From contig NW_027266286.1 of assembly GCF_022045235.1 (NCBI RefSeq), forward strand, positions 46,376,001-46,440,000: 64,000 nucleotides of DNA, read 5' to 3'. The notes below the pieces were generated by a model, which made no database searches, was not told the origin of the DNA, and saw nothing but the letters and a program-made list of their open reading frames with translations. Numbering within the stretch: the stretch's first letter is position 1; the number at the start of each line of letters is the position of its first letter. The position numbers and the translations under genes are program-made. Positions 2,480-52,500 of this stretch are shown here, piece after piece. This stretch comes from Haliotis cracherodii (Eukaryota).

Positions 2480-4764
2480 TTTCAATACACTGATATTTGA
2501 AAACAGAAAATGCAAGAACTGTACTACGCCGGGGGGCAGGATGCACACACCGAGTCTCTGTTGAACAGTTGTTGTAGAGGGAGACCAGCTCAGCGTTGTT
2601 GAACATGTGATGTCCACGTTCTGTCACATTGTCCGGGTTCACTGTGCAACTAGAGAGACCTAAACCACACTCTGTATTTTCAGTGTAGTAGGCGTCAGAA
2701 ATGGCGATCTTCTGGGTGCTCCTGCAGCTAATGTCATGTTGAGTACAGCGAATTGTGGGGTGAAGGGTTCCATAGCATGCTCTACTGGTTCGTGTTGTGT
2801 CTACACAAAATACTTGTCATAACAAACATGCATTAAAAACGGGAACGGTGTACCATAGCAATCCTTACTGACATGTGTTGTGCCTACAATATAAACACGT
2901 CACAACATATTTAATGTTTGAACATTTAACGTACGTATTTAATTAGTTTGAATGTAGAATGTATTATTATAACAACGCATTGGTTTCGATAATATACAAT
3001 CAGACATTTCATAATTGTTTAAGTAACTTTTGGGAAAATGTAAGGGTCGGGCATGGTATGTGGATACCAGATTTAAGTACGTATGCATTATTGACACAAC
3101 TGTAACCGAACTTGGTTGTTGATAGTATTAGCATATTGTCGGGCAAGATGTCACACAATAAAGAAGGCTACACCTCGTTTCCCTCATCCATGTGAGGAAA
3201 AGGAAGGGGGTGGAGCAAGTCAACATTTCCAGGGAACGAGGATGAGTGAGTATCACTACAGAACAAGGTGATGTCTTTAAGCCTCAACTGGCCGAACAGC
3301 AATGAATACAAATTTACACATATTAGTAAGTTAAAGCACTCTTTTCTGTATGATAAGTGATAATTTTAAACGTTAGTTCTTGATCGTTACTGTTAATGTA
3401 TAGCAGGATATATGCTATATTTGAAGAGTATTGCATGTTCTAAAATTAACACACAGTTAACTTTGGACTTCATGAACAACAAGGTAGCGGTCATCAAGTT
3501 CATCATACTCGATGGTTCATATTCACACGAACAACAACGTCCATCTAGAATAGATAAAGGAAATAAACTGTTGAGATGATTACCAGATTATATTCTTTAT
3601 CCGGGTTCGTTATATCCGAAGTTGACTTCACACCTATAAATATAATGAATACAATTTCTTCTAATCTGAATTATAAATTAGATCTACTGTGTACCTTAGC
3701 AAACACGGGTTTGAAGAATGAACATTACCTGAAGCATCATGATCAATCAAAATGAACACGATCCAACATGATAGCTACAGATAACACCACTGGAAACTGA
3801 AATTATTGTTCCATGTGCTTGTTTCCCCTAGAATACATACACTGTATCATTCGTCACCACTCGCCTCTTTCCGTAACCTGCAAGGAGACTCGTCCCCCTA
3901 TCGATGAATGCTATGTGCGAAAATACGACAAACCAATCAGAATGCGCGTATGATGTCAAGTTCTTCGTCAAAGAATCCCTCTGAAAATTATTTTTGATTT
4001 TGCATATGTCTTGCATCTATACCCAAGACAAAGTAAAATGTGTTCAATCATACTGTATAATTCCGCACGTCCCGGTGTGCTTTAAATTGCATCTGATATA
4101 TATATATAATATATGGGGAAATATATGTGAACCATTACGCAACGATTTGACAATTGTTTTAGGTATGCCCGTTTGCGCTTAGACAGAACCCGGTCGCAAA
4201 AATGGCCATGAGCGGGGCGAGAATCGCTATTCGGCTTGTCCCGGAATAACACGAGTTGGTCACGAATGGCACTGTATGCAGCTGGCCAACTAAAGTGGAC
4301 GTATTTGAACAGACATCTGGGCACTGTGATTTTGATGTGACAGACATTACATTTTTATCTGGTTGTATTGACTGTCCTTTCCTTATTATGATACTGGATA
4401 CTGCATAACTTCAGACAATGGAAACCGATAATTAGTACGCTATGAGGAGAGAACTTTCTCTTGACATCGGCAATGCAAAGTTACCTGTAAACGTATTGAT
4501 TTGAAACTTGAAATAAACCCTCCCGCGACATGTGTCTTTACACGTATAGAGCATGTCTGAGACAAAAATGCGTAAACAGCTTATCATAAATCAACATATC
4601 CTTTGGTTTCCATCATTATGTATACATCGAATCACTGTACTTTATGTCAGGTGCTCATCTAATATCACCATCTTCATTTTGATGTATATCTTACCTGTAG
4701 AAACTGGCTGAAGAATGTAGTAAATAAAGGTGACACATTGCCAAACGAATACAAATTTCGCCAT
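2480..4764 (-). CDS. G1: SUEL-like/CUB-like membrane receptor paralog, 5' part only (remaining exons probably left of the window)
   Basis: Signal exon 4764-4695 (MAKFVFVWQCVTFIYYILQPVSTG|gtaag). SUEL-like exon 2800-2480 (321 nt, phase 1-1, open): DTTRTSRACYGTLHPTIRCTQHDISCRSTQKIAISDAYYTENTECGLGLSSCTVNPDNV...LYNNCSTETRCVHPAPRRSTVLAFSVFKYQCIE|gtaagt. Both are homologous to exons of G2-G4. Confidence 0.8.
2843..2883 (-). pseudogene. 5' remnant of an older SUEL-like exon (G1)
   Basis: ttgtag|GTTHVSKDCYGTPF just upstream of the intact exon; the adjoining intron matches the intron of the paralogs. Confidence 0.7.
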
Positions 4765-6049: not shown

Positions 6050-9000
6050 CTTCACTATAAACAGTAGAAACAACAAACGCAATATTTGTGTGGAATAGAA
6101 TATGGGCGCAGTTTATTACAACATTTGTGACGAAACCCTGTGGGGGAGAGGTTTAAGACTAATACTAAAATAATAACTGAGCGCCGATATATCAGACGTG
6201 AGCAGCTCAGAGCATAAACAGGAGAGACTTTTCTCACTGGGGTCGCCTCAGATGAGTAACCCCCCCTGAGTTCGAGTCGACAAGCCGCCGACTCCACTCT
6301 GGTAAATATGCACAACCCGGCCAGCCGCCGGTAACCACCACTTCTGGCCAGCCGCCAGTAACAACACCTACGGTCAGCCGCCGGTAAAGCCACACCCAGC
6401 CAGCCGCTGGCTACCACCAACCTACCTTATTGAAGAATGTTATCTGTGAGGAACATCACATCAACAAATCCATTCTCCAATTCAGATCATAACAATAGTC
6501 CCGCCCACAGGGTCCCGCCACCGATCGCCACCACAAATGTAAGTCAAGTAGAACTGTTTAAACATATACTCTCCCGTACGTCCTATACTTCCTGTAAGAA
6601 AATAGCTATCCCCACATCGGAACGGGTGAATGTCATCATTGTGATATAAGTTGGAATCGCTTGCTGTTATATCATGCTTAATTCGACGTCCCCCGTTTTG
6701 CATATTAGATCCGTAACGAAACAGTTTACTCTCTTCCTCTTCCGTTTCAATAGCAGCCCCGTTTTGTGCGCCACGCCACACCCTTCTAGGTAGGATTTCC
6801 GACCACACCAGAAGTGTTTCAGGCATAGGCTCTGTGATACAAGAAACCAACCCTTCTATTTTCTTACTTAAGTCTACACCACTATCCTTAACATTGAAGA
6901 AAACTGGTATCTTGTAACTGGAAGACCATCAATATGTATGAAAAAACTCTCTTGGGATGATTAATGGGGTCTGATATCCAAATACAATCTCAGCAATGCC
7001 ACCGGGCAAATTGAAACATCAGCATGGGCTCCAATGTGCAGTTGAGCTGCTCTCAAATCGGTTTTGGATACTGATACGCTGGGTCTCTGTTACTCACTTG
7101 TTCACCTACACGCAAGAATCCAAAGAATGCCAAGGAGAACATACTCTGAAACAGAATAGTCTCGTACACCGACTTTGAAACAGATCGCAAGACTTCCGTT
7201 AACTGTTTTAACAATGGTAAGGTGATAGGAGCTCTTGTATCCGGCTTCTGAGCATCTCTTCTTATTCCTTGTAACAACTTCTTGATGAAACAATTCTCTG
7301 TAGGGTATGATGATGAGGCTAATTTATGATATCTACTAATATCTGAGATATGTTGATAAGCTGTTGCTGGAGACTTACCCTCCAATGATAGGTTGGCTAT
7401 GTAATGAGCAGTCTGCGAAACTGGAACCGGCCAGGTCTGATCTAGGTTATTGCTGAAACGAAACTGTTTAAATCCATGCAACGCATACCTGCACGCCTTA
7501 TTGGTGTTTTGAGATACTGACATACTTAATAGCCTGTTAGCTTCGTCTTCCATATCTGCCATAGAGAATCTGGTATTGGGGTTGGCTGCGGACAAGCCTG
7601 GGGTGCTATAATCCGAAACTGCTGCAACTGAAATTGGGATAAAGAATCTGCTATGCTGTTGTAGCACCCTGGAATATATTGAGATTTCATGATTATGTTA
7701 AGCTTCAAGCATTTGAGAGTAAACGAACGGACTAAAACCATTACTCTCGGTGATTCAGTATAAGCACTACTGCCTGGTTATCAGAATTATATATAGCTTT
7801 CTTGTTTGTAAGATGTTCCCCCCAAATATGAACTGCCACAAATATTGGGAAAAATTCCATGAATGTGATGTCTGAGGTGTAACCTTGGAGTCTCCATTCC
7901 TTGGGCCATAATCCAGCTGCCCACCTGCCTTTGAAGTACAAACCAAATCCACAATGCTCTCCACCCGCACCATCTGTAAATAACTGTAGAGAGTCACTTG
8001 ACATCCAATATTGGTCTGGGAACACTGTTTGCCATTGTGACAGCTTAAAAATTCCAGCCATGTATTAATGTCTTCCTTCATCTAGTCAGCCTGATATGAT
8101 GATATGCTCTCTTTTTATTTCTTGTTGAATCTATAAATCTTCTTGAAAATTGGCGTCCCATGGGGACTGCTCGGCAGATAAAGTTCAACAAACCTATAAG
8201 TGACTGCATTTCCCTCAATTTTACTTTATTACGATCTGCAAACCCATGAAGTAAGTTGTTACATTGATTGATTTTGTCTGTCGGTATTCTCAATTCGATT
8301 GTTACTGTATCAATTTCAATTCTCACTAGCAATAGGAACTCCCAACTACTGACATAGCAACAAAAAGGTGTCAAGAGCGTCTTGGCAACGATTAGGGTTA
8401 GGTGAGCTACCAAAAAGAAAGTCATCCAAATAGTGAAGTAATGTCCCTTGTTTCAACCTGCATTGAGTAACCCAGTGTATAAAACTTGCTACTTTTTCAA
8501 AAACTGCACAGCTCCATGGGGAGCACATATCTACATGATAGTTATCCTGAAAAAATATACCTAAGAGATCAAAATCTTGCTTATTGATTGGACATAATCG
8601 AAATCCACTTTTAATGTCTGCTTTTGCTAACATTGCCCCTTTGCCAAATTGGTGGACTAAGTACACTGCTTCGTCAAAACTTGTGTAAGAAACTGAGGCA
8701 TACTCATCATCAATATAATCATTGACTGATATACCCACTGGGTATGACAAATGGTGAATTAACCTATATTGCCCTGGTTCTTTCTTTGGGACAAGCCCAA
8801 TTGGCAACACCCTTAATTTTGGAAGTGGTGGGAAACTAAATGGCCCTGCCATCCTACCTGATGTAATTTCTTTCTGTAATTTCTGCCTGACTACTTCTTG
8901 TAGTTCTGTACATGATTTCAAGTTATGGGAATAACATGATTCCCTTGGACCTGTATAATTCAAACTAAAACCAAACCCCCTTGTGCATCGAGGCCCATGA

Positions 9001-9700
9001 GTCCTACTGGTTTGTTGTCATAGGTCTCCTGTCTGAGCCCTTTAGTTAAGATCCCTAATTCCACATACTCATTTTTCCAAATATTCTCCTTGATATTTTG
9101 AGGTATATTGGAACCTAAGTTATCTAAGTTATCGATAGGCTGAGGAGCAATAAACTGTGAGAAATCATGCACACCAAGCCCCTGTGACTGACTAATGCTG
9201 GTTTCCATAGCAAACGTACCGCTGTCGCTGCTATCAAGCTCAATAGGCCTATCGCCTACTGGTTGGAATCTAACTGTAGCTGTACTACTATCGGTATTAC
9301 TAGACCTACCACTTGATATATTTATGCAGCTCATCAACTAAGGGGGATAACTCACCTGTAGTTGAGACGAAACTGGCGGGCGCAGTCATTGTCTGCTTGG
9401 CCAATGTCGCTACCTCGCTGTCCGCTCGCTGAACAAGTTTCCTCTTTCTGCCAGCCCCTCTAGACTTAACAAACGCCAAACGCCCTGCCTGTCTACCCTA
9501 AACATCTTGAGACATCCTTTTTCCGTGGCATAGCAAGCTGGAAAGCTGTTAATCTTGATACAATACTTATTGTGCAGATCGAGCAAAAATTGTTGTTGCT
9601 GTCTATAGCGCAACATGAGCGGAAAGGATTAACACGTGACAACTGCACGTGAATCAGACAGATCTAGAGTAACCTCCCTTTCCCTATAACATGAAACCGG
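6050..9700 (-). mobile_element. Degenerate Ngaro-type (DIRS order) tyrosine-recombinase retrotransposon
   Basis: gag-like 8960-9337; RT 8346-8963 (YRLIHHLSYP, KADIKSGFR, HYLDDFL); RT/RNase H 8078-8425 and 7741-8061 (LFTDG, FMEFFPI, SDNQAVV); YR 7053-7560 (AFFGFLRVGE, then ICPVALLRLYLDIRP); SGNH-hydrolase-like 6482-6850 (VWSEILPR...DDIH). Frameshifts and internal deletions. Ends approximate. Confidence 0.88.
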
Positions 9701-12678: not shown

Positions 12679-12869
12679 NNNNNNNNNNNNNNNNNNNNNN
12701 NNNNNNNNNNNNNNNNNNNNNNNNNNNNNNNNNNNNNNNNNNNNNNNNNNNNNNNNNNNNNNNNNNNNNNNNNNNNNNNNNNNNNNNNNNNNNNNNNNNN
12801 NNNNNNNNNNNNNNNNNNNNNNNNNNNNNNNNNNNNNNNNNNNNNNNNNNNNNNNNNNNNNNNNNNNNN
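12679..12869. other. Assembly gap
   Basis: Run of N. Confidence 1.
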
Positions 12870-16938: not shown

Positions 16939-17122
16939 TCAAAGGTTCTGGTAATCTTGTGTAGCCGCCACCTCATGTGCCGTATCCCCTTGAAACTTGG
17001 AAGTCTGTTCAATAATGGCATAGTTGTTAACATGAGCTCCCGCTGACAGACCGGAGTAGGTCGGGTGTTCAATGGAAGCTGGGGTGTCACCTTGTTTCTT
17101 CACAGTAAGATCGTACCGACGC
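16939..17122 (-). CDS. G2 cytoplasmic exon (ITAM-like + YxN)
   Basis: RRYDLTVKKQGDTPASIEHPTYSGLSAGAHVNNYAIIEQTSKFQGDTAHEVAATQDYQNL*; phase-2 acceptor matches the TM exon. Confidence 0.85.
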
Positions 17123-20100
17123 CTGAAAAGACACATAGTTGGAGACTATAATCTGTAGGATAAGTGAATGGGGACGTCAGATCAGTTTCAGTTGAGGGTA
17201 AAATATCTGATCATCATGGCGAATATCCCTTTGCGATTCCCCACATCTGTAAATAGGTAATAAATCCCAATCGTGGTGTCCTCAGCTGTGATATGGCAGG
17301 AGGGATTTGTCAATAGTAAATCAAACATTTCACAGGTCAGATGGGTGTTATTACTGGGCGTGTTTCACTACATGATCCCGGAAAGGTAGCTTGTGAATGT
17401 GCTTTTGAATATACCTGACTACGAGGACGTACACTGCAAGATCGACCAGAATGACAATAACAACTCCAACAGCCATCCCTCCAAAAAACACACCGGCTGC
17501 AACACGAAATAGACCCTGTGTACTACAGAGAACAAGAACGGGAATACTGTTAATAATTAACATTCAATGAAAAAAACAGTTGAAAACAAAACATTTTGGA
17601 AAGCTTCCACACATTATACGTGATGTTGAATGGATGCATGCAAACGAGAAACAGTTGCATGTTTCAACTTCACAAGTTGAAACAAAACCTGACCAACCAT
17701 TGTGTACAGTATACAACTTTAATTTGCACATACATGTAGCTAATACGTTTCTACACGCCGTTTTGTACGTTGCATCGACGATACATAACTAAATAAGCTA
17801 TCAATTTATAACCGGCAGAAGTTAATCATTTGTTTGATGTTTTAAACTATCACGTATGAAATCCTACAATGAATAATGCTCACTTGCGAATTGTGAAGAG
17901 GTGGAAACAGGAGATCTGTGCTTAGTTGACTCAGTGCTAAGTCCCACTGTTAAAAGATGGACAAACGTGTATGTGCTTTCATGATCCACAGTGAGTATCA
18001 GCGATTGATGCAAAAGACAAAAATATATGTTCTTGTATTTGAATCGTAAATCAGAAACTAGGTAATGCAAATATTTAATAAGCTATTAATTCAATACACA
18101 CAAAACATATGTGACATCGCTTTGATAATGAGTAACGCTATCGATGGTAATAATAACCAAGGTCTGAGTGTAGAATCTCCTGTTCGAGAAAATGTACTTG
18201 TCGAATTTGTGAACAATTCCCATTTGGTGAGGAACCTGACGTGTATACCATATGAGCGGAATATAATCATCAACAATCTTTTTGTGAAATTGGGATGAGA
18301 TCGAAATAGATTTTAGGTCCAGTTTATGAACTATTTTAAAACTTCCCTGGAGCAAGAACTTCAACAGAGTTGAACGTTTCATGTGAAAATATCAACTTAG
18401 GGTATATACTTATTCTGTACTTTCAGATACAATGTACTCAGTGACAAGTTATTGAACGAAAAGCATGTTTTATGTATAATTTGAAAATATATCAACTTTA
18501 AAAGAAATGTGTTGCAACCGTTTAAACAGGTACTGTACAACATTTGTTTTAAGAAATAACGTAACTTTTATTTGCAGTGTGAACAAACGCGATGCAAACC
18601 TATGCTCACAATTGATGATGTTTATTTTTAACCGAAGTTGAACAAAATATGATGTACGTGTCTCTCCTACTTACTTACTTACTTACTTACCAGAATCCAA
18701 AGTAGGGTTGATGACGGTAACACCGAAGACGTTCAGAGACATATTTAGTTAACAGATAGGAACAAGCATAACTATGTTTATCATTTTAGAGACCTTTTGC
18801 TGCAGAATAGGTATCGATAAAAGACATCGAACTGGTTGCTCTATATTATATTGTGCTAAATAGTGTGTACATGTCTCTTGGCGTTGTTGGTGCCGTGGTC
18901 CTGCATTAAAAGATAATGTGATCATTGATAATAATACATTTTCTATTCATGAAATCAACATTTATTAGATATTAGGTCTTTAATAACCTTATAAGAAAGA
19001 CATCTCACAATAGTGAGACACGGTATAGGTGTCGGTATCAGTAACGCGACTCTTATTATTTAAAGATGCATCTTGCTTGATCTGCATTCAATATGTGTCT
19101 CCTACAAGTGTGCAATTACATGTTAATTACTAAGTCTTAGGAATAACAAAGCTGACATGCAATATGTTTACCTTTCGAGAAAGTTTCTGAAATTAGAACC
19201 GTTATTGTTTTTGAGTGTGTAATCATAAAAAATACTGGACTGTACATATACTGCATCCGATGTGACTGATAAGGGTACAATTTGTCTGGGCTATACTTAT
19301 CTTGGTTTAAAGTAATTAAAAGAAGTATGCATACATTTTGTGAGTGCGTATGGTTTTACGTCACTTTCAGCAATAGTCCAACAATACCACGGAAGGTAAC
19401 ACCAAAAATGATTTTCACACATTGTACTCTCGTGGTATATATTTGTGATCATATCGAAAACTTCACTAAATATTTCAAATGAAGCCACTGATTGTCTTTA
19501 CACCCCAACGTTTAGCCAGCTGATATACAGGTGTTGTTGCGGAAAGATGCCCGTTTGATTACAGACACATGTTGGATATTTAGATAAAAAATAGTGCACA
19601 TGGCAATATCAAATTACAGTTTATGCAGCATGTACTTGCAATAAAGTGAAAATCTGGACATGATGCCTACCTGTGCTTGTCACTGTTTCAGTTTCGCACT
19701 TCACATTGAAAGGGTCTGATGCTGCAACACACACAGTAACAAATGAGTATGTAATTTTCAGAAATTGAGATTTTTGGAAGATCAATTTTAATTATACACA
19801 ATCAAACATTGGAAATAGATTATGATCATAATGATTCCTATACAAGGACACATGCTGTTGCTGGGGGTACAGTACGAAAACATCAATATATAATTACACT
19901 ACTCATTCTCACCATTGATCAGAAGCCACACTAATGCTGATGACAGGCTTGGAATATCTGAGAAGTGTAGAGATATCGGGAGCTCCGCTGTTACGTTGAG
20001 TCTCTCAAACGGTATGAACTGAGTTGAACAATTATTTGTTGTGATGACATTCCCAGGTAGGACTGACAACCATGATAAGCATTCCTCTGGAGTTCCTCGT

Positions 20101-23100
20101 CCTAACATCGCGTCAAGAGCATACATTGATATGCTTGTAGCGGTGACATTAGACTTGAAAGTGCACAAATAATTGTTGGTTTGTGGTGTAGAACATGGTA
20201 TTCTTTGATCTCCATGGGTGAGTGAGACTTGAGACAAGCCTACTGCAACACCTCCACTGAGGTACAATGAATCAATTTCTGAAACATGCATACATTCAAT
20301 TAATAGACACTTTAAGATAAACCTTTGTCTCTTGAAGGTACCATATCCTAGCCGTCGTTATATATGTATTGGTTTGTCTTCAGGAATTATATATTCTCTG
20401 TTCTCGATGGATGAGTGAGACTTGAGACATATCCTGTGCAACTCCTCCACAGATGTACACTGAATCATGTCTGCAACATTTCATGTGTATACATGCCGTT
20501 GGTGCCATCATGTTTGACATGACATCATCTTTACTGTCTTCATTGTCATCTACATGTATTGGTTTCACACCTTCACACATGCACTCATATGGTAAGTCTA
20601 CGTGCGCTTCGAGATTTGTACACAGACATAGAGTTGTAGGTAATCAAACCCTATAATCAGATCATCGGTACGGTCGACCAGCTGAATGGCCATGATTACA
20701 ATAGGTAAATGTAAAAGTTACGATGATTGACGCCATAATGCTCTTTACTCAATTTAAACAAGTACTGAATAAAGACCACAAATTAAATATGAGATCGGTT
20801 AAACAGACGAATGATTCAACACATACTTGCAGAAATTATATATGTAAATGATGTAATAGGTATTCGAGTGACTGTATTGTTGTGTGCCAAGGTGTATTTT
20901 TATCAATTTTGCCAGACATATCACGGCGGGCAACACCTACAATGAGCTTCACAATAACTGCACCCTCGTGGAAGGGGGCGAATCAGGAACTCCTACTTTC
21001 TCTTATAGCTTGAAGCCGTTATAGAATCACAAGTGAACTCTGAAACATAACTGAGCTGATGTTCTCGTTTTTCTGTCATTAGTCTGTTATCGAATACATT
21101 AGTGTGTCACAGCATACACCTTGGTCGGAGGCGGGATACATACACCGATGTTCTGTCGACCAGTTGGGAGTCTGATAGCCATGCTTTGTCCGACTGTCAC
21201 ACCTTTTTCACAGATCAACTAGAACGACCTGCTCCACATGTAGTTATTATACACGGGGAGCTTGGTTGGTTTTAGTGTTAAAATTTATTATGTACTATTT
21301 TACTAAATCCATTTTAGGGAATATTTATTGAATGAAACATCGCGACTGCTCACCTCGTAGAGTGATTTTAGTTTTGGTATTTATGACAGATGTATCTTTG
21401 TTTCGAATAAATGTATGATACTTCAATATTACTTGTGTTATCAGACACCTACTTTCATTGAATCTGAAAAGTAAAGGTCGGGGGGACGAGAACATCATTG
21501 GTTGCCTGTCGCAAACACTTACAAACATTCATTGCACAACACACATTAAATAACATGTGATATTTCATCAACGCTGATGCTCATCCAACTGCACATAGGA
21601 AGCTTTTCCTACTCAAATAGTAGCAACAGTTATCAATTATTCATCTTCTACCAATAAACACTTACTTTCAATGCACTGATATTTCACAACAGAGAATGTA
21701 AGAGCTGCACCTCGTCGCAGGGCAGGATACACACACCGAGTCTCTGTTGAACAGTCGTTGTAGAGGGAGATCAGCTCGGCGTTGTTGGACCTGTGATATC
21801 CACGTTCTGTCACACTGTCCGGGTTCCCAGTGACGCAACTGGAGAGACCTGTTCCACACTCTGTATTGTCAGTATGATATGCGTCATAGATTGCGATCTT
21901 CTGGTTGCTGCTGCAGATGAGTACATGCCAAGTACAGGGAAGGCCAAGAGATCCATAGCATGCTTTACTGGTACGTGTTCTACCTACATAAATGACACGT
22001 CACAACATACAAGTATGAACACATATAGTGAAAGTAAATCAGTGTGAATGTATTATTTCTGATTGTACCGTCTTTCTCTCAATTGTCCATCACTCACTTT
22101 TTCAGGAGTATGCCAACTAATTGATAACCTGAAACTCTATATTGTCAGTGTTGTATACGTCATACCGCCTCAGTCAGCAATATTCCATCTATACGATGGC
22201 TGAATACAAGACACGCAACGAAAACAATACATGCTCTGCTTGCCTGTCCTTTGTAATCCTCATGCAGTGCAATTTTGTCACTTAATTAATGTTAAAACTG
22301 ATGTGTTTCAAGAAACATAAGGCGATATATGACACACCCTGCGTACAAGTATGTGTCTAATGCAAAATTGGACAATTACCTGTTCTTTTAGTGTTTATAG
22401 TGGTAGTGTCGAACATATAAATTTATATCGTGAACATATGTTATGCCAATATATAAAATGACATGATAAAACATCATATATTATACAATTCAGATCAATG
22501 CACAGCATATTATAGCTTCACAGATATCAAAGATAATATACCAAGATTGTGTGAAACGGAGTAGTGCTAAATATTTTGCAGATGTGAAGTTGTGGTGGCC
22601 GATGGTGTCTTTTCATGTAGGTACTTCAAAAGTACATTTCTGTATACATAACTATATCCTGTGCGTTATCAGAGTACATATACATATGAACCTGTCCGAT
22701 CTTCATGTGAAATTTGGTTTGAATCACAATAAAAATCATAACTTGAGAACAACTTTTTAGCATCATTGATAAACTCCGATTTGGACATTTTCACATGTTC
22801 GACTTTTACGCTGTTAGGAGGTATCCTTAACATCATTAGTCTCTGGATCATGAACATGTGTCTGTTATCGCATCTGTACATGGCCGACCTTCACTTTAAA
22901 TTTGGTTTGTACGACTAAAAAATATTGTGACTTTAGACAAAAGTTTAGCATCACTTAAATACATCAGCAATTTCAACCTGACGGTGGACTCTTAATAACC
23001 GAGTCTGGACCAGACAATCAAGTGATTTACATCATGTGAGCATTGATCTACGCAAATAGGATTCGATATCATGCATCAACCAAGTCAGCGAGCCTGACCA

Positions 23101-31222: not shown

Positions 31223-34200
31223 CTAAAATCAGTTTAGAGAAAACAGATAACTTAAACAGTAATGCATGTGGTATTATGAAGAACACATTTCAATATATTC
31301 GTAGTTTCTTTAACCAATAAAAAATCTTGACTTTTCAGTGATGGTGAAAATGTTTGTTCGCGTTGTGTACATAATTGCAAGATGCTTGGTAAGAGACTTT
31401 GCTAAGGGGGACACGTGTATATGTTTGTGTTTGGGCAACGGAAACTGACACAGTGTGTAAAGGAAATCCCTTTATGAGCTTTAAATAAATGTGTGAATGT
31501 GTTGCAGGACCTCTGATAAATGATGCACGTCTCTTATCTCGTGTCACCTCATAAAAGTTTAGCTTGTTCCTTCTATATGTCATAGCTATTACCATGAAGC
31601 GCAATGCACGTTTTTAGTTGTTGTTGATAGCTACAATGGGCCTAATTAATATGTCACTGTAACGATACATGAATTTGAATACACTTGAATACTTACCTCT
31701 TCCGTATAAGCGCCACTGACACCAATGTTACAACCAATACAGCTAAGACTGTGGCCACAACCCCACCAATAATTGCACCTGTATCATCTTCTGAAATCAA
31801 GCAAAGTTTATTCTCGGTACATGTAACATGAATATCAAATTTGGTGCTTATATATGACAATACACATTGTTAATAAGTAAATTAACTTTTCCCATACACC
31901 TTTTCTTTTCTGTTGCTAATGGGTTTATTCTTCAGTTGGCACATGAAATACGCCCCATGAAAAAACCCTACCGGGATCGGATGGCCAAGCCCTGTTGATA
32001 CATGTCATCATATGCCATTGGTTAGATTTATACTCATGATGTTAATCAAAGGTTTGTCCGGTCGAGCCTTGGTTATTTACCAACCGCTGACATATAGATG
32101 AAATATTGCGGCGTTAAACAAGAAACAAACATGAAATACAATTACGCCTATNNNNNNNNNNNNNNNNNNNNNNNNNNNNNNNNNNNNNNNNNNNNNNNNN
32201 NNNNNNNNNNNNNNNNNNNNNNNNNNNNNNNNNNNNNNNNNNNNNNNNNNNNNNNNNNNNNNNNNNNNNNNNNNNNNNNNNNNNNNNNNNNNNNNNNNNN
32301 NNNNNNNNNNNNNNNNNNNNNNNNNNNNNNNNNNNNNNNNNNNNNNNNNNNNNNNNNNNNNNNNNNNNNNNNNNNNNNNNNNNNNNNNNNNNNNNNNNNN
32401 NNTTTGGCTCAATTCCTTACCTCGGTTACAAAAGGTTCCCTAAATTGTTTGTAAACATGTACAATAAAACTGTAACAAGGTAAGTTAAACATTATTGCTC
32501 TTTAAGTTAGTTTTTGCTGTTTTTGCCAACACAATATACATGAATGTCATGCCTTAACTCGGTCGTCTAACCTCGTGTACGAGTATTTTTAATTGTTAGA
32601 ATTTGCTTTCTAAATGTGTTCTTAAACGTCCAATTTATGTCCCAAGAAAAGAATCCGGGTATTGTCTATTGCAAACAATAAAACGACTACGCAATAGGTT
32701 TAAATGGAATTAACAAGATGTTGTTTGTTGAAGAAAAAAGCTATATAAAAATATATTGAACTGTAGTTAATAATTTGTACTAATCCATAAATAGGTATCT
32801 TAATCGAATCCATAAACATATGGCGCATTAACACTGCATCCTACCTGCTGTGCGAGTGTCGTTCTCCCTTGTCACAGTTGAGACTATATTATTGGTTGTT
32901 GTTATTGCACTGGATTCTGCAATACAAGACAGGGCACTAAAACAATACAAGTGTATTTTGTGGAGGAAACATGATCGATTTTTGTTCCCATACTTGTACC
33001 TGTACGACCAGAGTCACCTTTTTTTATATTCAGATACACATGTTGACAATGTGACAATAGAACATTACAGAAGTGACCATGCAACAAGTGCATACAGAGA
33101 AATAAAATGTAAATGCGGATACATTTAGTGGTTGCCTACCTGTGTTTGTCACTGTATCAGTGTCACACTTCACATTGGAAGAGTCTGATGCTGCAATATG
33201 GCACACACATAATATAATACAGTTATGTTATCTTACTGCTTATTCATACAATAAAATAAACTACTGCTGATGACATTGTGTTGTGTGACTACACAATCAA
33301 AAGCATGCGAACAATCAGAAAATGATCAATTGAACAACTTTTTTGCGAAAGGGCCTGTGATTTCATACTCTACAATTGAACACACTGTAATACTTCTATA
33401 AATGCAATATCTCAGTTTGCCTCTAACATCACCTGTACTGACATAACTCATGATCATACATCGTGTGTCTCATTTTGTATTTTGTAAACATGATTTCACT
33501 ACTCATTCTCACTATTGATCAGAAGTCAAACTAATGTTGATGGCGGCCTTATAATATCTGAGAAGTATAGAGATATCGGGATCTCCGCTGTTACGTTGAG
33601 TCTCTCAAACGGTATGAACTGATTTAAACAATCATTTGTTGTGATGACATCCCCAGGTAGGACAGACAACTGTGATAAGCATTGCCCTGCAGTTCCTCGT
33701 CCTGACCGCGCGTCAAGAGTGAGTGAGTGAGTTTGGTTTAACGCCGCTTTTAACAGTATTCCAGTTATATCACGACGTGTCAGGTTAATGTGGGAGGAAA
33801 GACCGAAGTGATGCAGGTCTCAGACGGTTACCACTTCAGTGAAACCCACGAGCATGGGTATGGTGCTGACAAACCTAGAAACATAATCGGGGTGAACCGG
33901 GATTCGAACCCACAATCATAAGTTTCTGGCTTGCCTAAGGGACGCAACTCTGCACAGCGAATCGTGGTGCCTTAGACGACCGGGCCACCCGTGAAATTCT
34001 ATAGTATGCTTGTAGTTGCGCACAGCCATGGATCTATGACCAGCCGCTTCACATATAAGCCTACCCACTGCATGATGAAGACAGCAAGCAGCAAACGCAT
34101 GCAGTGGTTAGTGCGGTATCCAGTCAAGCCAGCTGTTTTACACATTCTAACTAAGTCGCAAGCTTATGTTGCCCCGAACGTTTTTCACAATTCATTCTCC

Positions 34201-36661
34201 CTAGAAGGTTTATCTAACGGTCGGAAATGAAACGCAGCTGTTAGAGTTGATGATGGACACAGCAGGAAACAGTTCCACAACACATCTGTAAGGGTTTTCA
34301 AAACTTTCGTAGGCAACACTATCTGCTGTGCTTGTTTACTCCACTGTCAGTTAAAGATGCTTGTTCATTGTCCATTAGATACCTTCCATCTCCGAGTTAA
34401 CAGATCTGAAGCTGGTCCCCTGTTATGCGGATATTCTCCTCTGTCTAATAGTTTCAGCAACTGCTTTTTCTTATCAACTTTCCAAAAACTGGTTGCATGA
34501 GTATAATGTCACGAATTAATTGACTGTTTTGAATGTGATAAAATCTCTGTTTGTTTATTCTTTTGTTTGTTCTTTTAGAAGTAGAGATGTAAAAGGTACA
34601 GTGAGCATCATGCCAACGTTTTCAGTGGGTAGCCTTGCTCTGAATTATCGCAGTTTGCTATTAAACTTGCACAAGAAATGCTTAAAAACATTAGAAAGGC
34701 TCGTTTATGCCTCGTATGTCTTAATACAAACATCCTATAATATAAGTTATCAGTTAACATATACCACATCTTTGCACAACCCCAAACACAGGACACGCCA
34801 TTCTCACAAAAGAGGCGCCATTTTGTCGTAGACATGGTACGACCAAGCTGGAGACCCCGCAATATGTCTGCACACCGCTTAACTGTCAATAACTGACTTG
34901 TAATTCGCATAATTATTGACATGCCACCATGATATACCCGACGTTGTGTTTGACAGCAGCTATGTTGTCCTCCGTCGAGTCGTGTCACACGAGGGCACAT
35001 AAAGGAGAGCGGATAATTCATTATTCAGTGGAGGTGAAATAGTGAATAGGTAGTTGCATATATTGGACAAAAAGGCAGTTTCATGGGGAACGGAAATAGA
35101 CGAAGAAACTGGTGTGGACAACTTCTAAATTGAATTAAGTTCTATTCTAATTAAGTCGATACAAACTAGAAAATATCGATGCCTGAGGGAAAAGCAGAAG
35201 ATCAACAGCGTTTCTTATGTGTTATGTATCACGACCAATCAGTTATTTTGAAACCAACCCTCACTTACTGTCAATACACGGATATTTCACAACAGAGAAT
35301 GGAAGAGGTGGACAACGCCGGATAGCACGAAACACACACCCAGTCTGTGGAGAACAGTTGTTGTGAAGTAACTCATCCAGCAACATATATTATCACAGGA
35401 ATAGTATCAGAGATCAATTATTATTATTCTACCAATAAACACTTACTTTCAATGCACTGATATTTCACAACAGAGAATGTAAGAGCTGCACTGCGCCGGG
35501 GGGCAAGATACGAACACCGAGTCTCTTTTGAACAGTTGTTGTTGAGGGAGGCCAGCTCGGTGTCGTTGAACCTGTGATGTCCATGTTCTGTCACACTGTC
35601 CGGGTTCACTTTGCAAGTAACCAAACCTTGTCTACACTCTGTATTGTTAGTGTAGTAGGCGTCACAGATGGCGATCTTCTGGTTGATGTTGCAAATGATG
35701 TCATGTCGTACACATAGAGGGCCAGGAGATCCATAGCATGCTTTACTGGTACGTGTTGAGGCTGCATAAACGACAGGTCACAAAATGCATGTATGAACAT
35801 TTACGATGCTTTGAAAGTAGTTTGCATCTAGTATTTCTAGTATATTCTATTGTATCGCTATCCATTACGCAACGTTATCGTATACATACTAACTCATTGT
35901 TTGGACATTCCATAAATGTGGTAGTAATGTTAGAGAAATTGTAAAAATTGAGGATCGTGTGCGGATCTAAGATATAGGTTACAACACAAATGTTTGTTAT
36001 CGTGTTCTGCAGTACAATTGCGAATACTCCGCGAATAATTTGGATATAATTTGCGAATAACTCGGGAATAATCCTTAGATATCCGCGGATTTTTTCGAAA
36101 ACTATTTCATTGTTTTATGGTACTAATTTGGAGCTTTATAGGATTATCACGCCGTCAACGAGTGGCGGGCCATGGCAATACTCTCCATATATTTACACTA
36201 TATACTGCTATTCTGTGACTTTAGTGCAGGTACATGTATTATTAGGTTTGATAAATACATGTAAACACCAGTTTGTAATATAGTCCTGCTTTGATAATGC
36301 TGTCATGAAATGTTCTTTTGGACATGATGAATATTTAATTATGGTCGAGTTGCAAGTCTTCTCGCCCCCGGCTTTTTGTGTAAAACAAAACACGCGCATA
36401 ATTATAAAACCCAATGTACCCAACGTGATAATGCTACAAATCATAACTTTGACACTGGTTTTATCACAGTTAATGTGTGTACATGTACATTTACTTTGTT
36501 AAAAAAACACATACACTGTTAATGTATGGAGGGACGACCTGCATTACATGTTCTCCTACAAAACTGTAGATTTTCTACTGGACTATTTATATCACGACCC
36601 AGAAACAAAAGACAGCATGGCAAACAGTTTCTACAGAATATTTAGAATGATCACAATGTGC

Positions 36662-36725
<64 letters not shown>

Positions 36726-39782: not shown

Positions 39783-39830
<48 letters not shown>

Positions 39831-44687: not shown

Positions 44688-44877
44688 TCAAACGTTCTGG
44701 TAATCTGGTGTAGCCGCCACCTCATGATCATGTTTCGTTTCGCCTTGAAACCAGGTAGACTGTTCAATAATGCCATAGTTGTTGACATCACCTCCCGCTG
44801 ACAGACCGGAGTAGGTGGGGTGTTCAATGGAAGCTGGGGTGTCTCCTTGTTTCTTCGGGGTAAGATCATACCGACGC
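44688..44877 (-). CDS. G4 cytoplasmic exon (ITAM-like + YxN)
   Basis: RRYDLTPKKQGDTPASIEHPTYSGLSAGGDVNNYGIIEQSTWFQGETKHDHEVAATPDYQNV*. Confidence 0.87.
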
Positions 44878-47800
44878 CTGCAAGGACGCGTAATTTGAAG
44901 CACGGTGATGAAATTGACGTCAGAGTCAGTAAATAGAGAAAACAAATATAATCATCAAGGTAAATAACCAATTGCGATTCCCCACATTGATAAATCCCAA
45001 TCGTTGTGTCATCCGATGTGATATGGCAGAAAGGTTATTAGAAACATAAAGTCACTCACTCACTTCACAACTGAGACTTGCGTTATTACTGGACGTCTTT
45101 CAAAGTATAATGTCCACTAAATAATATAAGGATAGATAGTGAATGTACTTTTAAATATACCTTACAACGAGGACGTACACTGCAAGACCGACCAGAATGA
45201 CAATAACAGCTCCGACAGCCATCCCTCCCACAAACAATCCGACTGAAACAGAAATATTCAATGTTTATTAAAAATAGAACTAAAATTCTTCTAATTAACT
45301 TTCAATTAAAAGAAACATTCAAAAGAAGGCAGTTAGTCAAATAGTCATGCAATGTACATCTGTATTTCTTAACGAATAGGTAGAAGCAAACGATCAGCAG
45401 TTAGTCAAATAGCCATGCAATGTACATCTGTATTTCTTAACGAATAGGTAGAAGCAAACGATCAGCAGTTAGTCAAATAGCCCTGCAATGTACATCTGTA
45501 TTTCTTAACGAATAGGTAGAAGCAAACGATCAGCAGTCCTTATTTACCAATACCTGCAAAACCTGATACGATCATGCTCTTTGCAACTTGCTCTTGTAAA
45601 GCTATTTTGTCCGAGCAAAGGAAAAAAAACCCAAACATCTGATGCATGTACACGTACAAGTAATTTGTAGTGAGATCACTAAGAAATATCGGGAGGTTTT
45701 ATTATTTATTATTTTATCTTTTGAACAAATATATATGAAATACCACATTATACAATGCATACCTGGGAATTGTGAAGAGGTGGGTATAATCGATTCGTCC
45801 CCAGTTGACTTAGTGGTTAATCTCACTGATAAAAATCATCAGCAACGAGTATAAACGATCAATACAAAGTCATTATATCCTCACAGTAAAACCAACACAA
45901 AAATATATGATATAGGTATAACTAACCATATATTCCGAACATTATAAACCTAAAATATTTTATCAGATATCGATTTTATTTAAAACACATTGTCACGTCA
46001 CATTGAAAAAGATTAATGCTGTAGATGCTATAAAGGAACATTACAAACATATTTACCTAATAGGATTGAACAAGGTGGCAAGCCACAATGTCCCATCAAT
46101 ACCTGGTATTTATGACGAGTTGACTGTGAAAAAAATGAAATTACTTGTTTTATCTTTTGAACAATTAGACAATTAGATAGGAAATCCCACACTGATTACT
46201 GCATACCTGGAAATTGTGAAGATGGGGATATAGTAGAGCTGTACTCAGTTGACCCAGTGGTTAGTCCCCCTGATAAAAAAAAGTAGACACACGTTTATGT
46301 GCTGTACATTCAGTACATCTTCCCAAGGCAAGTGAGTTAACTGACTATAAAAGTCCAGTTTCCACCCTTGCCGAACTAGCCTGGGATTATGGAGTTACAT
46401 TTTGGCTGGACTAACAAGTCTATGCATAGTCCAATCAAAATCGCGCACCGAAATCGAAATCCGGTTCGTTAAGTGTCATGCAGATTTCGGTCGACTGCAG
46501 CATTTGCAAAACATGTGCACCGCTAACTCGTTGTCAACAGATATTTTCTAAATCTATTCATGTTTTTAATCAAGGTGCTCATGTGATGTGATGCACTTCG
46601 CGATGTCAGACTCGTTTCATCAAAATATAGATCTTGATTATCGATCAGATCGTCTTGACTGGGCGCCACCCTTTTGTTTGAAGCAAATGCAAGTGATACG
46701 AGAGGTTGCATCTGATTGGTCAGTAGGAGAGGGATAGAAAGGACATGACTCGCAATAGCCACTGGTGGCGCTACGATCGAGCCCAGTAATTACAGCCTAG
46801 TTCGGCAAGGGTGGAAACTGGACTTTTAAAGTCAGTTAACTCTCTTGCCTCGGGAAGATGGATCACCAGGTGGTGCATGGGGTTTTAAGCGTCCCGCGTT
46901 AGGCTCGTGGTATAAAACCTGATGGGGGACGCATAAAACCCCATGTACCTTGAGTGATCCTGCTACAACGAATTTATCTTACCGACATGATTAAATGTGA
47001 CATTGTAAAAGAATTAACACAAATTCAATAGTGATAGAAAACAGCTGTTCGATTGAGGTGAGGTTAACTTGTGCTGTGTCACGTGACTGCCATTCGTGCG
47101 GCTTTTTGCTCTGAAGCGGGTTATAAGGGATTTATTATGTCTCTCAGATATCCACGTGCAGCCTGTACTGTTCATGGCGGGGTATTAGAGATTTAATGCC
47201 CCGCTGAGAAAGGCGGGTTACACAGTATTTTAGGAAGATCACGTGGACCAATCAGATCTCATCATTCTGATATGGAGGTATCATAAGATTGGTTATGAGT
47301 GTATTCGGAACTACGTGATGCCAGTATGTAAAGCACATTCTTTCACATCACATTGATAAAGATTTATGGGTGCTTCTTTATACCGATGTTTACATGATGG
47401 CATTATACAATACCTTAAAGTTTATGTTTTACCCAACACGACTGAATGAAACATGAACGATGTACATCACGACAATGGGACTCGAATATGGCAATATCAT
47501 TGGATTTAAATGATGGCAATATGTTAAAGACACATTCATGTGTGTGTTTGTGTGACCAGGTACCTACACGTACGAGTCCGTACCAAACCAATGGCGGTTT
47601 AACAGTGCTGGACCACTGAGATAGTGAGTGAGTTGGGTGAGCGGCGCCTTAGACAACTGCCCCCCCACCGTGTTTTACAGTCTGTCATTAGCAGACTATG
47701 AAACAGGTACAAACAAACCAAAATGTTGACAATCGACCCCTTTCTTGGCGCCCCAGGTCAACGACAAGAGTGTAGGTTCGATTGATCCGAAACAAGGCTC

Positions 47801-49537
47801 TACGAAATTGACCTCATACGGCCAATAAAATTGCTACAAGCTTTCAGGCTACTGGAGTACGAGTTACGGGTCAGACGATTAGAAATCGTCTACATGCAGC
47901 TTATCTCCATGCACGGTAGCCTCGTGTACATGTTGTGCCGCCCCGAACAAAACGCCATATTGCCAACATGCGTCAGTGGTGAAGACAATGTCGAACCTGA
48001 GAGGTAATCGTCGATGGTCACGAGTTACGTTTTCAGATGAGTCCTTATTAACGTTGCACTTTCGTGATAGGCGTGGTCGTGTCATGAAAGTGTCGAAATG
48101 AAACTTAAGTCAACGCCCGAGATCAGCATGCACGAATCGTCAATGATCACCTTCAGTAGCATCCATCGAATGCCATGGCCAGTAATTAGCCCTTGACCTT
48201 CCCCCAGCTGAACACGTCTGGGAGAGACGTGTGCGCCAACGTCATAAGCCGCCGACCATGCTGAACTTCGCAAGGCGCTACAAGAGGAGTGAGGCAGACT
48301 CTCTCACATTGTCATTGGGAGATTCATGCGCAGTATGCCTCGTCGAGTGAGTAAATGTAGACAAATCGTGGCAGTATTACGTACCACTGATCCAAAACGT
48401 CAACTTTGAAACTTCCTATCTTTTCCCTATCGTCCTTCAAGATCGTTGACGGTCATGCCATCTACTCTCATACCAGTTTTAATTATGTTGTGCCCTTAAT
48501 TCGTTCATTATTATCATACAACTATTAGTCGAAACTACTATTTCTTACAATTTTGGAAATTTCAGTTATTTCCAAGTATCCCATACATTTTTAAAGGGAA
48601 TATATAAAGCACTACAAGGAACTTTTTTGTTCAAAGCATAAACAAGAAACCTTATATACAAACATGTTTTCACATATCGTCTCACACACACACACTTTAG
48701 GGATTGCACCGCAATGGATTTCTATAGCATGAAAGAAATGTGAAAATTAATTATTTGCTTTGAGAAAAAACAAGGCATGATAATCGGTTCAGGCATTTTG
48801 ATCGGTACTCAAATTCGGCCAATGTTTTTTTTTTCTTTTTACTTCATACATTTAGTTGCTGCGGAAAGTTAGGGTACATTTTGATTCACTGATGTAAAGT
48901 ATAATACCTTGTTTGAAGCCAGTCGGTTAATACACTTCCATCTCCCTCATATTCTGTTATTATGCATAATAAATCCATACGGCATGATCGAAAGTGGTCC
49001 ATCACTATCAATCCGGTATGTACATGTACACTATACAGTGAAAATCTTGATACAACATTGGCCTACCTGCGCCTGTCACTGCTTGACATGTCACATTAAA
49101 AGGGTCTGATGCTGCAATATAACAATCACATGATATCATACTGTCAGTTAAAATTACTGTTTATCTGGAATTGGATATATAACCAATTTGACATATGCAT
49201 TTATATAAGCACTATGAACATATATCGTACAATTAAAACTATACAATAACCAAAACTACTGCTGATGGCGCAGTTTCACTCTACAGTCAAAGAAAACATT
49301 TTGGTCAATCGAAATACCCCTAGATCTTTCATTTGATTGTATCCGACTGGTTGAGTTACGACTAAGGATTTCTTATTTCACTGTCGAAGTTCAATAAATT
49401 TGTGTAATGCATTTCATGCAGCCCCTACTAAAACATCCTTATTGAAGTCATATATGTATTCGGTGTTTCATTTATGACAAAGACACATGCGTAAGTTCAC
49501 TTCTCATTCTTACCATTAATCAGAAGCCAAATTAAAG

Positions 49538-49575
<38 letters not shown>

Positions 49576-52500
49576 GATCTTGGGAAATCAACGAAGGTTA
49601 AGGATATTGGGGGTTCCGCTGTTACGTTGAGTCTTTTAAACGATTGGATAACTGATGAACAATTATTCATTGTGATCTCATTATGAGGTAGGACAGATAA
49701 CTTTGAGAAGCACTACCCTGGAGTTGGCTACCCGACCGCCCCAATAATTAAAACTACTGCTGATGGTGCAGTGTCACTCTACAGTCAAAAACAACCTTTT
49801 GGTCAGTAGAGATACACCTTGATCTTTGATGTAATTGTATCAGGACTGGTTAAGGTACGACAAAGGAATTCTTATTCTACTATTGAACTAACTTTTATAA
49901 ATTTGTGTAAATACAAAAAACGGTTTGTGTGCAACCCCCACTAAACATACTTATTGAAATTATATATCGATACATGTTTTTATTTGTGAAAAAGGCACAA
50001 AGATATTCTCACTTCTCATTCTTACCATTAATCAGAAGCCAAATTAAGGTTGACGATGATCCCAGGAAATCCAAGTTTAGATATATTGGGAGTTCCGCTG
50101 TGACGTTGAGTCTCTTAAACGGTCGGAACCCAGGTGAACAATTGTTAATTATGATCTCATTCTCAGGTAGGACAGATAACTTTGAGAAACATTGCCCTTG
50201 AGTTCCTCGTCCCAGCCTCGCGTCAAGAGCATACACTGATATGCTTGTAGCAGTGACATCAGACTTGAAGCTGCACATATAATTGATGGTTTGAGTTGTA
50301 GGAGTAGGTGTTCCTTGTTCTCTGTGGATGAGTGAGACTTGAGATACTCTCTCTACAACACCTCCACTGATGTTCAGCAATTCACCTTCTGCAACATTCA
50401 TAGTTTCAGTCATAAGAAACATTAAGATTAACATGAGTGTCTCGAAGGTACCATATCCTATTCATTTTCGTTATCAAGCCAGGATAGCGTTCATTTAGAA
50501 CAATTCATGATTGCTTGGTAATACAGTGTGCTTTCCACATTTCTAATATGACTAGTATGATTTTAGGCACACCGTGTTCTCTTCCACGTCATTCTATGGC
50601 TCCTACACTATACTATTTTATTGCTTGAAGGGACTTACAGGAATCGAAGAGTGAACAGCGAAGAGCGACTCTTATGTTTAACGTGTGTCGTAGAACTAGG
50701 ACCACTCGCAGTACGAGGCGGAAATTCAATCTAGAGGAAAACCTGCATGTACCCGCACAAGAAAACAGATCACATACATGGATACGATGACATTGGCAAA
50801 TTTTAATGATGGGGAAGTACATCGCCATGTAGTAAACAATAATGGCATCCATTTCAGTTGCATGCAGATTTATGTTTATCGCAATGTTCTGTGTTTTGAT
50901 ACGCTCCACCACGAATCTCATAGGTAGGCTCCTCGGCCGAACTGGCATTTCCTTAAATAACAGTGCTTACAGATTTCAGCTGAGATTCTGTAGTACGCTT
51001 ACAGTTACGCACATCCATGACTCTATTAGCTATTGATCAACCAACTGCCTGGTAAAGACGTCAAGCAAGAAACGTTATCAATACAGTATCCAGTATAGAA
51101 AGCTCTTATCCTACACATTCTTCATAAGGTTGTCACAAACGTCTGTCACCCCAAAGTTTTTTCGATAAACTACGGACGGCTGCGAACAAAACGCATCTGG
51201 TACAGCTAGCATTGCTTTTCAAACAATTTCAATCACATCTGTAGGCATTGCCCGGATATTCGTCAGCAACAATGTCTACATTGAGCCCTCCACTATTTGT
51301 TTTAGTAATTTGCTCACTATACATTAGACACCTTCCTCCTTGACCGATCTGACATAGTGAGGTTGGTCACTGCGCAGTTTCCTATGTTCCTGTCCACCAT
51401 GTAATGCAAAGCTACTACCAGCAATATACACCATCGTGCCCAGCAGCTTCCCAAGGTTGTCGCTTCCCAAACAACCATTTCGACCATAGAACGTCTTACT
51501 CCTCCATTTCGTCTTCAATATCATGACATTATCCAAAGTATTCCGTACCTGTGAATCCAGTTGTAACTGGCTTCACATGACGAAACTGTACAGAGTACGT
51601 GAAGATATAATCTGAACCGTCAGCGCATTCTGGGTCGTGTCTTCGAATTCCGTCAAACCATGACGTATTTCTGCTAATCTGTGCCTGTTACACTCCTTGA
51701 AACTCTTCACCGCCAATACTACTGGTAATTACCCTTTATCCTATAATGGGTAGGTTTCTCGGCAAGATAAAAGAATAAAAATGATATCCGTTGGGGTCAT
51801 CTGCGGATAGAGATGCAAATATCAAAGATCAAATAGGGACTACTTTCAGTGTTTATTAACAAACATGGCGCAGCCCTTGTCATTCGGCGATCGAGTCAGA
51901 ATTAACCATCGGGAATCTGAATGAACTACAGAGATAACTGCTATCATTATCAAAGGAACAGCCTTATATCCTGAAAATCAGTGTCTAACTGTGAACAGCT
52001 ATGACAACTTTGCAGATATAAATTTCGAAACAATTTTGCGAGGGCACTAGGCCAAGCCATATCAGAAGCCATATCTGTGCTTGTAGACCTCTGCGGCTTG
52101 AAAACTTTTCCACAAATTAATAAAGTTGGATTTGACCGAAATATGTTACCTTGTTTCGTTGTGTCGCTGTGTGTCCATCTGACTGCACTTTTTAACGTTA
52201 TGACAGAACAGGCCGACTGTCAACAACGTCTGAACGTGGTCGTGACGTCTCATACACTAGGGTTAGAGTAGCTTCTCTTTGACAAAGGGCAGTAACTCAA
52301 GCGGACAGACCGATGGATTGCCGCGAAAGACAAGTAAGAAAAAAATGTTGTTTTGCGAATATGTTGCTTCGCTACTGTATTAGAAACAGATTTCTGTTGA
52401 AACTAAATTGGCTACTGTCACTGTCCGACTGACACATCACTTACCCTGTGACGTAATAAATATAAATGCGCGCATTCCAGGAAAACTCACAATGTTTCGG

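Follow-up and report, generated by a model that had tools for sequence, protein, structure and literature searches.

Why does a cluster of receptor genes carry half-exons, each with a single splice site, close beside whole copies of the same exons? The question is raised by a 64,000-nt stretch of the genome of the abalone Haliotis cracherodii (NCBI RefSeq assembly GCF_022045235.1, contig NW_027266286.1, positions 46,376,001–46,440,000; hereafter the window), in which a first-pass annotation had placed such a remnant next to an intact ectodomain exon in four of five genes. We propose, with a probability of roughly two in three, that the remnants are scars of repair events in which a double-strand break in an ectodomain exon was mended with sequence copied from a paralogue.

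The five genes of the window (G1–G5) belong to a tandem array of 13 or more paralogues, all on the minus strand, between 46.30 and 46.51 Mb. We analysed 150 kb of contiguous sequence (46290001–46440000), which takes in the paralogues gA–gD to the left of the window, and covered gE–gH to the right as 3.3-kb pieces (±1.5 kb) around the two ectodomain exons; in this right half of the cluster (the G5 SUEL-like exon and gE–gH) the transmembrane (TM) and tail exons fall outside the scan. Paralogue alignments and splice sites give a gene model of a signal exon ending in phase 1, a 318-nt exon here called SUEL-like, a 366-nt exon here called CUB-like, a stalk exon of 45–51 nt, a TM exon and a tail. 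The two domain names are used as labels only. Coordinates are those of the window unless marked as genome positions, and all exons and remnants given below lie on the minus strand.

Four half-exon remnants (R1–R4, in G1–G4 respectively) were each recovered by self-BLAST, by BLAST against the 150-kb cluster and by nhmmer with exon profiles, at the positions first described and each with its one splice site. As had also been claimed, they are diverged from the adjacent intact exon (57–83% identity) and lie 40–300 nt from it, the gaps being about 40 nt (R1), 74 nt (R2), 83 nt (R3) and 285 nt (R4). The count of four genes in five was too low: in the profile scan all five window genes carry at least one remnant, the additional ones lying at 52973–53047 in G4, at 22132–22248 and 21094–21239 in G2 and, for G5, just outside the window. 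R2 is common to gB and R3 to gC, both of them paralogues outside the window.

Every remnant adjoins either the 318-nt SUEL-like or the 366-nt CUB-like exon, as judged with nhmmer exon-class profiles, and the same scan found no partial copy beside signal, stalk, TM-A/B or tail-A/B exons. In simulations, a half-exon diverged by 25% was detected with a power of 100% for the SUEL-like, CUB-like and both tail exons (40/40 for the tails) and of 43–78% for TM exons, dropping to 25% with signal exons and to 2.5% with stalk exons. The absence of remnants first reported beside signal, TM and tail exons is borne out by the scan and, given these figures, is informative for the tails, partly so for TM and not for signal or stalk. 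An unbiased scan of the 150 kb revealed 18 local direct-repeat loci, 5 of which touch a SUEL- or CUB-like exon, against a share of 3.7% of the DNA for these exons (binomial P = 4e-4); two of the five (G3 and gC) represent one inherited event. No remnant proved closest to its own adjacent exon in trees or identities (a comparison without power for R2 and R3), nor were remnants equally frequent around all exon classes, the others having none; these were the two patterns that the first-pass annotation had set against its own proposal.

The clearest of the four cases is R4. The intact CUB-like exon of G4 (50026–50388) is chimeric, being of G5 type downstream from about 50301: in the tract 49726–50301 (minus strand) G4 and G5 differ at 29 of 575 nt (95% identity), against 125 of 400 nt just upstream (69% identity; Fisher P = 2e-28). 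The tract begins about 86 nt inside the CUB-like exon, passes the exon end and continues through 270 nt of intron, and its terminus reads GGGCGGTCGGGTAGCC. Directly next comes the middle of a diverged second CUB-like copy, R4 (49244–49725), which comprises the putative old 3′ half of the G4 exon (49514–49725, donor kept) and that copy's own intron. The 16 nt at the end of the tract (49726–49741, minus strand) are identical to the head of a short interspersed element (SINE) in G5, where the same letters begin a complete 164-nt tRNA-type element (61118–61281, minus strand) with the target-site duplication TTAATTATTG on both sides and at the same intron position; this element marks donor-type sequence. 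R4's own intron runs through that position without a SINE, as an empty site. The SINE belongs to a high-copy repeat family (for example, 19336–19509) and is not called as a tRNA by ARAGORN.

A junction at which SINE letters abut an empty-site copy implies that the working half of the exon came from a SINE-bearing gene of G5 type and that R4 is the original G4 sequence. Phylogeny points the same way: R4 is 83–85% identical to gD, gE and gF and is free of a 3-nt deletion common to G4 and G5, a clade joining R4 to G4 fails the approximately unbiased (AU) test (p = 5e-6), and G4 and G5 are sisters with support of 100/99. Both flanks of G4 are of its own lineage, G5 likeness being lost upstream of 50301 and R4 with its intron resembling gD, gE and gF; because G4 is not G5-like upstream of the tract, the event is a patch and not a crossover. 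The donor type was left whole, with both the G5 CUB-like exon (61564–61926) and the SINE intact, and donor-derived filler, the SINE head, is present at the out-of-register junction. Together these features argue strongly that R4 is the scar of an interlocus gene conversion from a G5-type donor into G4.

R1 makes a good case of a similar kind. The intact SUEL-like exon of G1 (2481–2800; nhmmer profile positions 3–317) differs from the paralogue gG in its first ~130 nt and in the 38-nt intron leader before them, as located by sliding identity: the exon start is 67–84% gG-like and the leader about 60% by hand count, and leader and exon start carry a private 6-nt insertion. Upstream lies R1 (2839–2883; by profile 2842–2882, positions 2–42), which corresponds to the first ~45 nt of the presumed original G1 exon, retains its acceptor AG (2884–2885) and continues into a gG-type intron (2886–2960). 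Over 120 nt, R1 and the intron upstream of it match gG at 87% identity, rising to 90% for the intron alone, and they form a clade with gG (support 97/89), and the intron downstream of the exon is 92–93% gG-like, such that both outer flanks of the patch are of one lineage. G1 is thus probably a gG-type gene with a replaced exon start, its old first 45 nt and acceptor displaced 40 nt upstream.

A half-exon beside a whole one might also arise by local tandem duplication over an exon–intron border, through slippage or unequal sister-chromatid exchange, if one copy then decayed and the functional exon was later homogenized by ordinary homologous conversion. Each remnant with its spacer does form an offset direct repeat (80–480 nt), 13 other local direct repeats occur in introns and spacers of the same 150 kb, and a single clade of R4, G4 and G5 is not rejected (p = 0.38). 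Local duplication cannot, however, yield the R4 junction, with donor SINE letters on one side and an empty site in the remnant intron on the other, and the enrichment of repeats at ectodomain exons goes unexplained by it. At R1 it would need a second event with a tract boundary that coincides with the duplication junction, and would still not account for a working leader of ~60% gG likeness against ~90% in the leader of the remnant. In its simple form, tandem duplication was rejected for R4 and R1, on the foreign SINE letters, the exclusion of R4 from a clade with G4 and the closeness of R1 to gG rather than to G1. For R2 and R3, which are too old to carry a donor signal, the test has no power. 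We regard local duplication as possible but unlikely.

R2 (20352–20470, as read by eye) comprises the first ~119 nt of a CUB-like exon with its acceptor and forms a 192-nt offset repeat with the intact exon of G2 (19913–20278; nhmmer profile 1–366). By profile it spans 20360–20467 and is directly preceded by the acceptor 'gttgcag'; 74 nt separate it from the exon downstream. R2 is found in both G2 and gB and therefore predates the duplication that separated them; the gB copy is cut by a SINE. The two copies form a clade (91/90) and are 66–76% identical to all exons, from which they are roughly equidistant, and p-AU is 0.028 for a grouping in which both copies join G2 and gB and gC is left out. 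Homology between G2 and gC starts exactly at the R2 junction and covers only 81 nt of a 1.4-kb intron. Among gB, G2 and gC, synonymous divergence (dS) is 0.04–0.08 in the CUB-like exon, versus 0.27–0.31 in the SUEL-like exon of the same gene pairs. These observations indicate an exchange limited to the CUB-like exon among the three genes and give moderate support to a patch, one too old for a donor to be named.

Upstream in G2, the intact SUEL-like exon (21666–21981) is flanked by two older pieces located with nhmmer. A 5′ piece (22132–22248; profile 7–128, E = 5.6e-5) lies upstream of it and is common to gB (E = 9e-4), and a 3′ piece (21094–21239; profile 125–313, E = 1.2e-7) lies downstream. 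We interpret the pair as the two sides of a single old exon, into which a copy of ~890 nt was inserted at about position 126. We also note weak CUB-like 3′ matches (profile 303–363) 1.2 kb downstream of the intact CUB-like exon in G2 (18687–18742, E = 0.004) and in gB (genome 46316724–46316778, E = 0.001), which could represent an older 3′ relic.

R3 is of a different character. It lies beside the intact SUEL-like exon of G3 (35448–35759) as a 3′ remnant (35262–35385; by profile 35270–35365) with the donor GTAAGT (35268–35263), and the copy that it shares with gC is 85% identical. R3 is 76–81% identical to every intact SUEL-like exon, its own included. With nhmmer, 3′ SUEL-like remnants were found in gA, gC, gD, G3, G4, G5, gE and gF; those of gD, G4, G5, gE and gF form a second group, 82–95% identical within the group and 56–69% identical to exons, to which the degenerate remnant of G4 (52973–53047) next to the intact exon at 53107–53428 belongs. 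A single origin of all the 3′ SUEL-like remnants is neither shown nor rejected (p-AU = 0.33). We read them as inherited relics and not as gene-specific events.

Further signals at the scale of single exons were seen in the cluster. The CUB-like exon of G3 is represented by its 3′ part only (33514–33719; nhmmer profile 160–365), being cut by a SINE (33717–33993) of the same family as that at the R4 junction, at profile position 160 and with loss of the 5′ half and ~700 nt of intron. The same family cuts the gB copy of R2 (genome 46318561–46318650). The last letters of the SINE tail, ACTCACTCA, are similar to the exon motif CTCACTCAC, and the family may insert preferentially there. In gE and gF the CUB-like exons and flanking introns are 98% identical (dS 0.04), with a dS of 0.20 in the SUEL-like exon, a contrast that would reflect either a further exon-scale exchange or a partial recent duplication. 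In G4, two tandem intron copies of ~180 nt (53426–53782, minus strand; 88.5% identity), common to gF, end 2–4 nt from the start of the SUEL-like exon; this duplication may be another out-of-register junction, here one without an exon remnant.

The repair that we propose would run as follows. A broken ectodomain exon would be repaired with a paralogue as the template; one end of the copied tract would join in homologous register inside the exon, and the other would be sealed out of register, through either a non-homologous or a microhomology-based joint. What was displaced of the old exon, splice site included, would stay 40–300 nt away and then decay. In G2 both ends would have joined out of register, such that halves of the old SUEL-like exon flank the inserted copy. 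An intact exon that is in register on one side only, with the old half beyond, fits paralogue-templated break repair with non-homologous capture of the second end; a double-strand break as the trigger and a route resembling synthesis-dependent strand annealing (SDSA) are what we infer from these end products.

Counted in this way, the family history would hold about five to seven independent events: R1, R2, R4, the split exon of G2 and one to three among the 3′ SUEL-like remnants. Several predate later gene duplications and hence are common to paralogues. The suggestion of repeated paralogue-templated replacement thus stands strongly for R4, well for R1 and moderately for R2, with R3 giving no donor signal, and the recurrence holds at the level of these few events in the family and not gene by gene.

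Several points weigh against this reading. For R1, the AU test leaves a clade of the remnant with G1 unrejected (p = 0.15, from an underpowered 120 columns), and no extant donor for the G1 patch was found. R3, like the remaining 3′ SUEL-like remnants, stands equally far from all intact exons (56–81% identity) and carries no donor signal. At the R4 break, the microhomology between SINE head and exon is imperfect (7/10 by eye, GGTCGGGTAG versus GGTTGGGACG). Trees of the SUEL-like and CUB-like exons are not formally incongruent (p-AU = 0.11). The bias in exon class rests on few events once inheritance is allowed for: on the basis of exon size, we estimate the probability of restriction to ectodomain exons, as against tails, at about 0.04–0.06, which is marginal. 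Finally, the evidence base is the sequence of one genome.

Unequal crossing-over between misaligned paralogues at illegitimate sites would give chimeric genes with partial exon duplications, and several features of the cluster suit it: the array is head-to-tail, tail types A and B (described below) are mixed along it, and, within a given pair of genes, adjacent exons differ in dS. It would, however, leave one whole side of the gene donor-like, whereas at R4 and R1 the two outer sides are of one lineage and the identity between G4 and G5 falls to ~80% or less upstream of 50301. We consider it improbable.

Also improbable is a dedicated germline or haemocyte process that targets breaks to ectodomain exons, by which the scars would be by-products of programmed diversification of an invertebrate family of ITAM receptors (see below). 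If true, such programmed patching would give molluscs a counterpart of immunoglobulin gene conversion. We favour a neutral account of the exon bias: the two ectodomain exons are the only long segments conserved in all paralogues, so only they would prime ectopic repair. The further proposal that replacement is under selection finds no backing in the ratio of non-synonymous to synonymous divergence (dN/dS), which is 0.5–0.6 in all exon classes, ectodomain and tail alike.

There is only a slight chance that the remnants are functional, whether in splicing (as alternative or decoy sites, or as poison exons) or as a reservoir of donor sequence kept for conversion. Each does keep a consensus splice site, and the family's NCBI models for H. 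rubra and H. asinina include several isoforms. Between sister genes, however, the remnants are not better conserved than intron (R2 79% versus 80–89% for introns; R3 85%), the possible acceptor–donor segment of R3 is 76 nt long and would shift the frame, and no intact exon was seen with remnant-specific states, although no systematic search was made. Among sequencing runs, none on record as RNA contains this stretch, and the four that match it best consist of DNA contigs in which the introns are present. An assembly artefact, whether false duplication or haplotype mixing, can be dismissed despite two N gaps in the window: the remnants are too diverged from their neighbours (57–83% identity) to be false duplicates and are common to paralogues tens of kilobases away, DNA contigs belonging to a different run set (~94% identical) independently bridge the G2 exon start and R2, and the gaps lie 1–3 kb or more from any remnant. 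One gap (32152–32402) falls in the G3 intron between the stalk exon (33140–33190) and the TM-B exon (31697–31789), cuts no exon, has flanks that are colinear and on the same strand as in the sister gene gC, and is 2.9 kb from the closest remnant. The other (12679–12869) falls between genes, with the G2 stop 4 kb above it and the G1 signal exon 7 kb below it, and is irrelevant to the remnants.

What the ectodomain exons encode was approached by searches with single exons rather than with the joined protein. The names SUEL and CUB, used in the first-pass annotation, have no Pfam support: translations of four exons matched no Pfam family at E ≤ 10, neither SUEL (PF02140) nor CUB (PF00431). Full-length Haliotis proteins likewise gave no Pfam family at E ≤ 1, the listed matches being unrelated families below their cut-offs, and, as a test of the SUEL assignment, a profile of 14 paralogues found no match among PDB chains at E ≤ 10. 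A language-model feature search (Atlas) with the SUEL-like exon returned PF02140 clusters as its top matches (score 0.93, 204 shared features, 10/10 in agreement), which we treat as a lead only; the same search with the CUB-like exon gave no usable match. AlphaFold2 models built from paralogue alignments were too poor for use, with a predicted local distance difference test score (pLDDT) of 44 for an all-beta CUB-like exon and of 38 for the SUEL-like exon.

The tails are of two types. Type A (G1, G2, G4 and gB) is short and carries YSGL-x8-YAII and a terminal YQNL; type B (G3, G5, gC and gD) is tyrosine-rich and ~600 nt long. In G2 the last exon reads ...YSGLSAGAHVNNYAII...YQNL* after the TM exon, which matches the pattern of an immunoreceptor tyrosine-based activation motif (ITAM; YxxL/I, 6–8 residues, YxxL/I, after TM), and the ITAM tail is kept in G4, gB and G1 and in H. 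rubra proteins. By this motif, the type A genes are predicted to be ITAM-bearing receptors with an activating-type tail. Along the array the two types alternate on similar ectodomains, with short ITAM tails at 16939–17122 and 44688–44877 versus long tyrosine-rich ones at 30682–31221 and 57860–58468, a mixture reminiscent of vertebrate clusters in which activating receptors are paired with others.

Each of the nine complete CUB-like exons has an open reading frame. A profile of this exon retrieves only 7 representatives among 1.84 billion proteins; the three that we looked up are all listed as 'uncharacterized protein' from Haliotis rubra or H. asinina and have the same architecture. The family thus appears to be an abalone-restricted group of uncharacterized surface receptors, and a literature search found nothing on it or on half-exon scars.

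Elsewhere in the array, G1 has no CUB-like and no stalk exon in the interval (373–2480 within the window) between its SUEL-like exon and its TM exon (genome 46374375–46374455, just left of the window), and may be either a SUEL-only receptor or a broken gene. An orphan tail-B exon lies between gD and G1, 7.1–7.6 kb left of the window (genome 46368353–46368899; profile 57–608, E = 2e-83); the profile scan found no TM-B, stalk or ectodomain exon near it, and it is probably a gene fragment. The spacer between G1 and G2 holds a run of long open frames of 148–223 aa (6485–9337, minus strand) that resembles a decayed mobile element. A 68-nt tandem repeat in three copies, 97–99% identical (45329–45537), lies in the stalk–TM intron of G4, ~90 nt upstream of the TM exon.

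The proposed repair from a paralogue has parallels in several known systems. Interlocus (ectopic) gene conversion occurs in tandem immune-receptor and MHC families, such as KIR, LILR and MHC class I and II, and the abalone cluster resembles these in the one-way copying of a few hundred bases between paralogues, in tracts that fall on the (here putative) ligand-binding exons, and in mosaic genes whose neighbouring exons have different histories. Classical tracts of this kind stay in register from end to end, with no duplicate left behind, whereas in the abalone genes one end (in G2 both) is out of register and the old half-exon is kept as a dated scar. Coupled homologous and non-homologous break repair, by one-sided invasion or by SDSA with end-joining capture, has been described in experiments with mammalian cells and Drosophila. 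Those products match ours in pairing a homologous junction with an illegitimate one, in taking up additional donor sequence (at R4, intron and 16 nt of SINE) and in a local duplication; they were induced in reporter constructs, whereas those of the abalone arose naturally, became fixed in the germline, recur within one family and were passed on through later gene duplications.

Two further comparisons concern immune-type genes. Immunoglobulin V genes of chicken and rabbit undergo conversion templated by pseudogenes, a somatic and programmed (AID-dependent) process with dedicated pseudogene donors. The likeness is that diversity in a putative binding domain comes from the copying of neighbouring related segments; unlike in those genes, nothing in our analysis of the abalone cluster points to programming, somatic activity or remnants as donors. 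Human KIR2D genes contain a pseudoexon 3, which is complete but omitted during splicing. It too is a non-functional ectodomain relic kept within an immune-type receptor gene and inherited by many paralogues, but it is a whole exon, whereas the abalone relic is a half-exon displaced by a copied patch.

The mechanism proposed here is of kinds already described, gene conversion and coupled homologous and non-homologous repair, and nothing shows a new mechanism, selection or somatic activity. What is new is a natural, repeated and unusually legible record of such repair in an uncharacterized abalone receptor family. Conversion between paralogues is usually a statistical inference that has no physical trace; half-exons and a SINE-head scar offer direct structural evidence of single events and reveal the direction from donor to recipient, the ends of the tract and the relative age of the events. 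The cluster shows an invertebrate receptor array reshuffling its putative ligand-binding exons exon by exon, with common and private scars as markers for the order of its duplications and exchanges.

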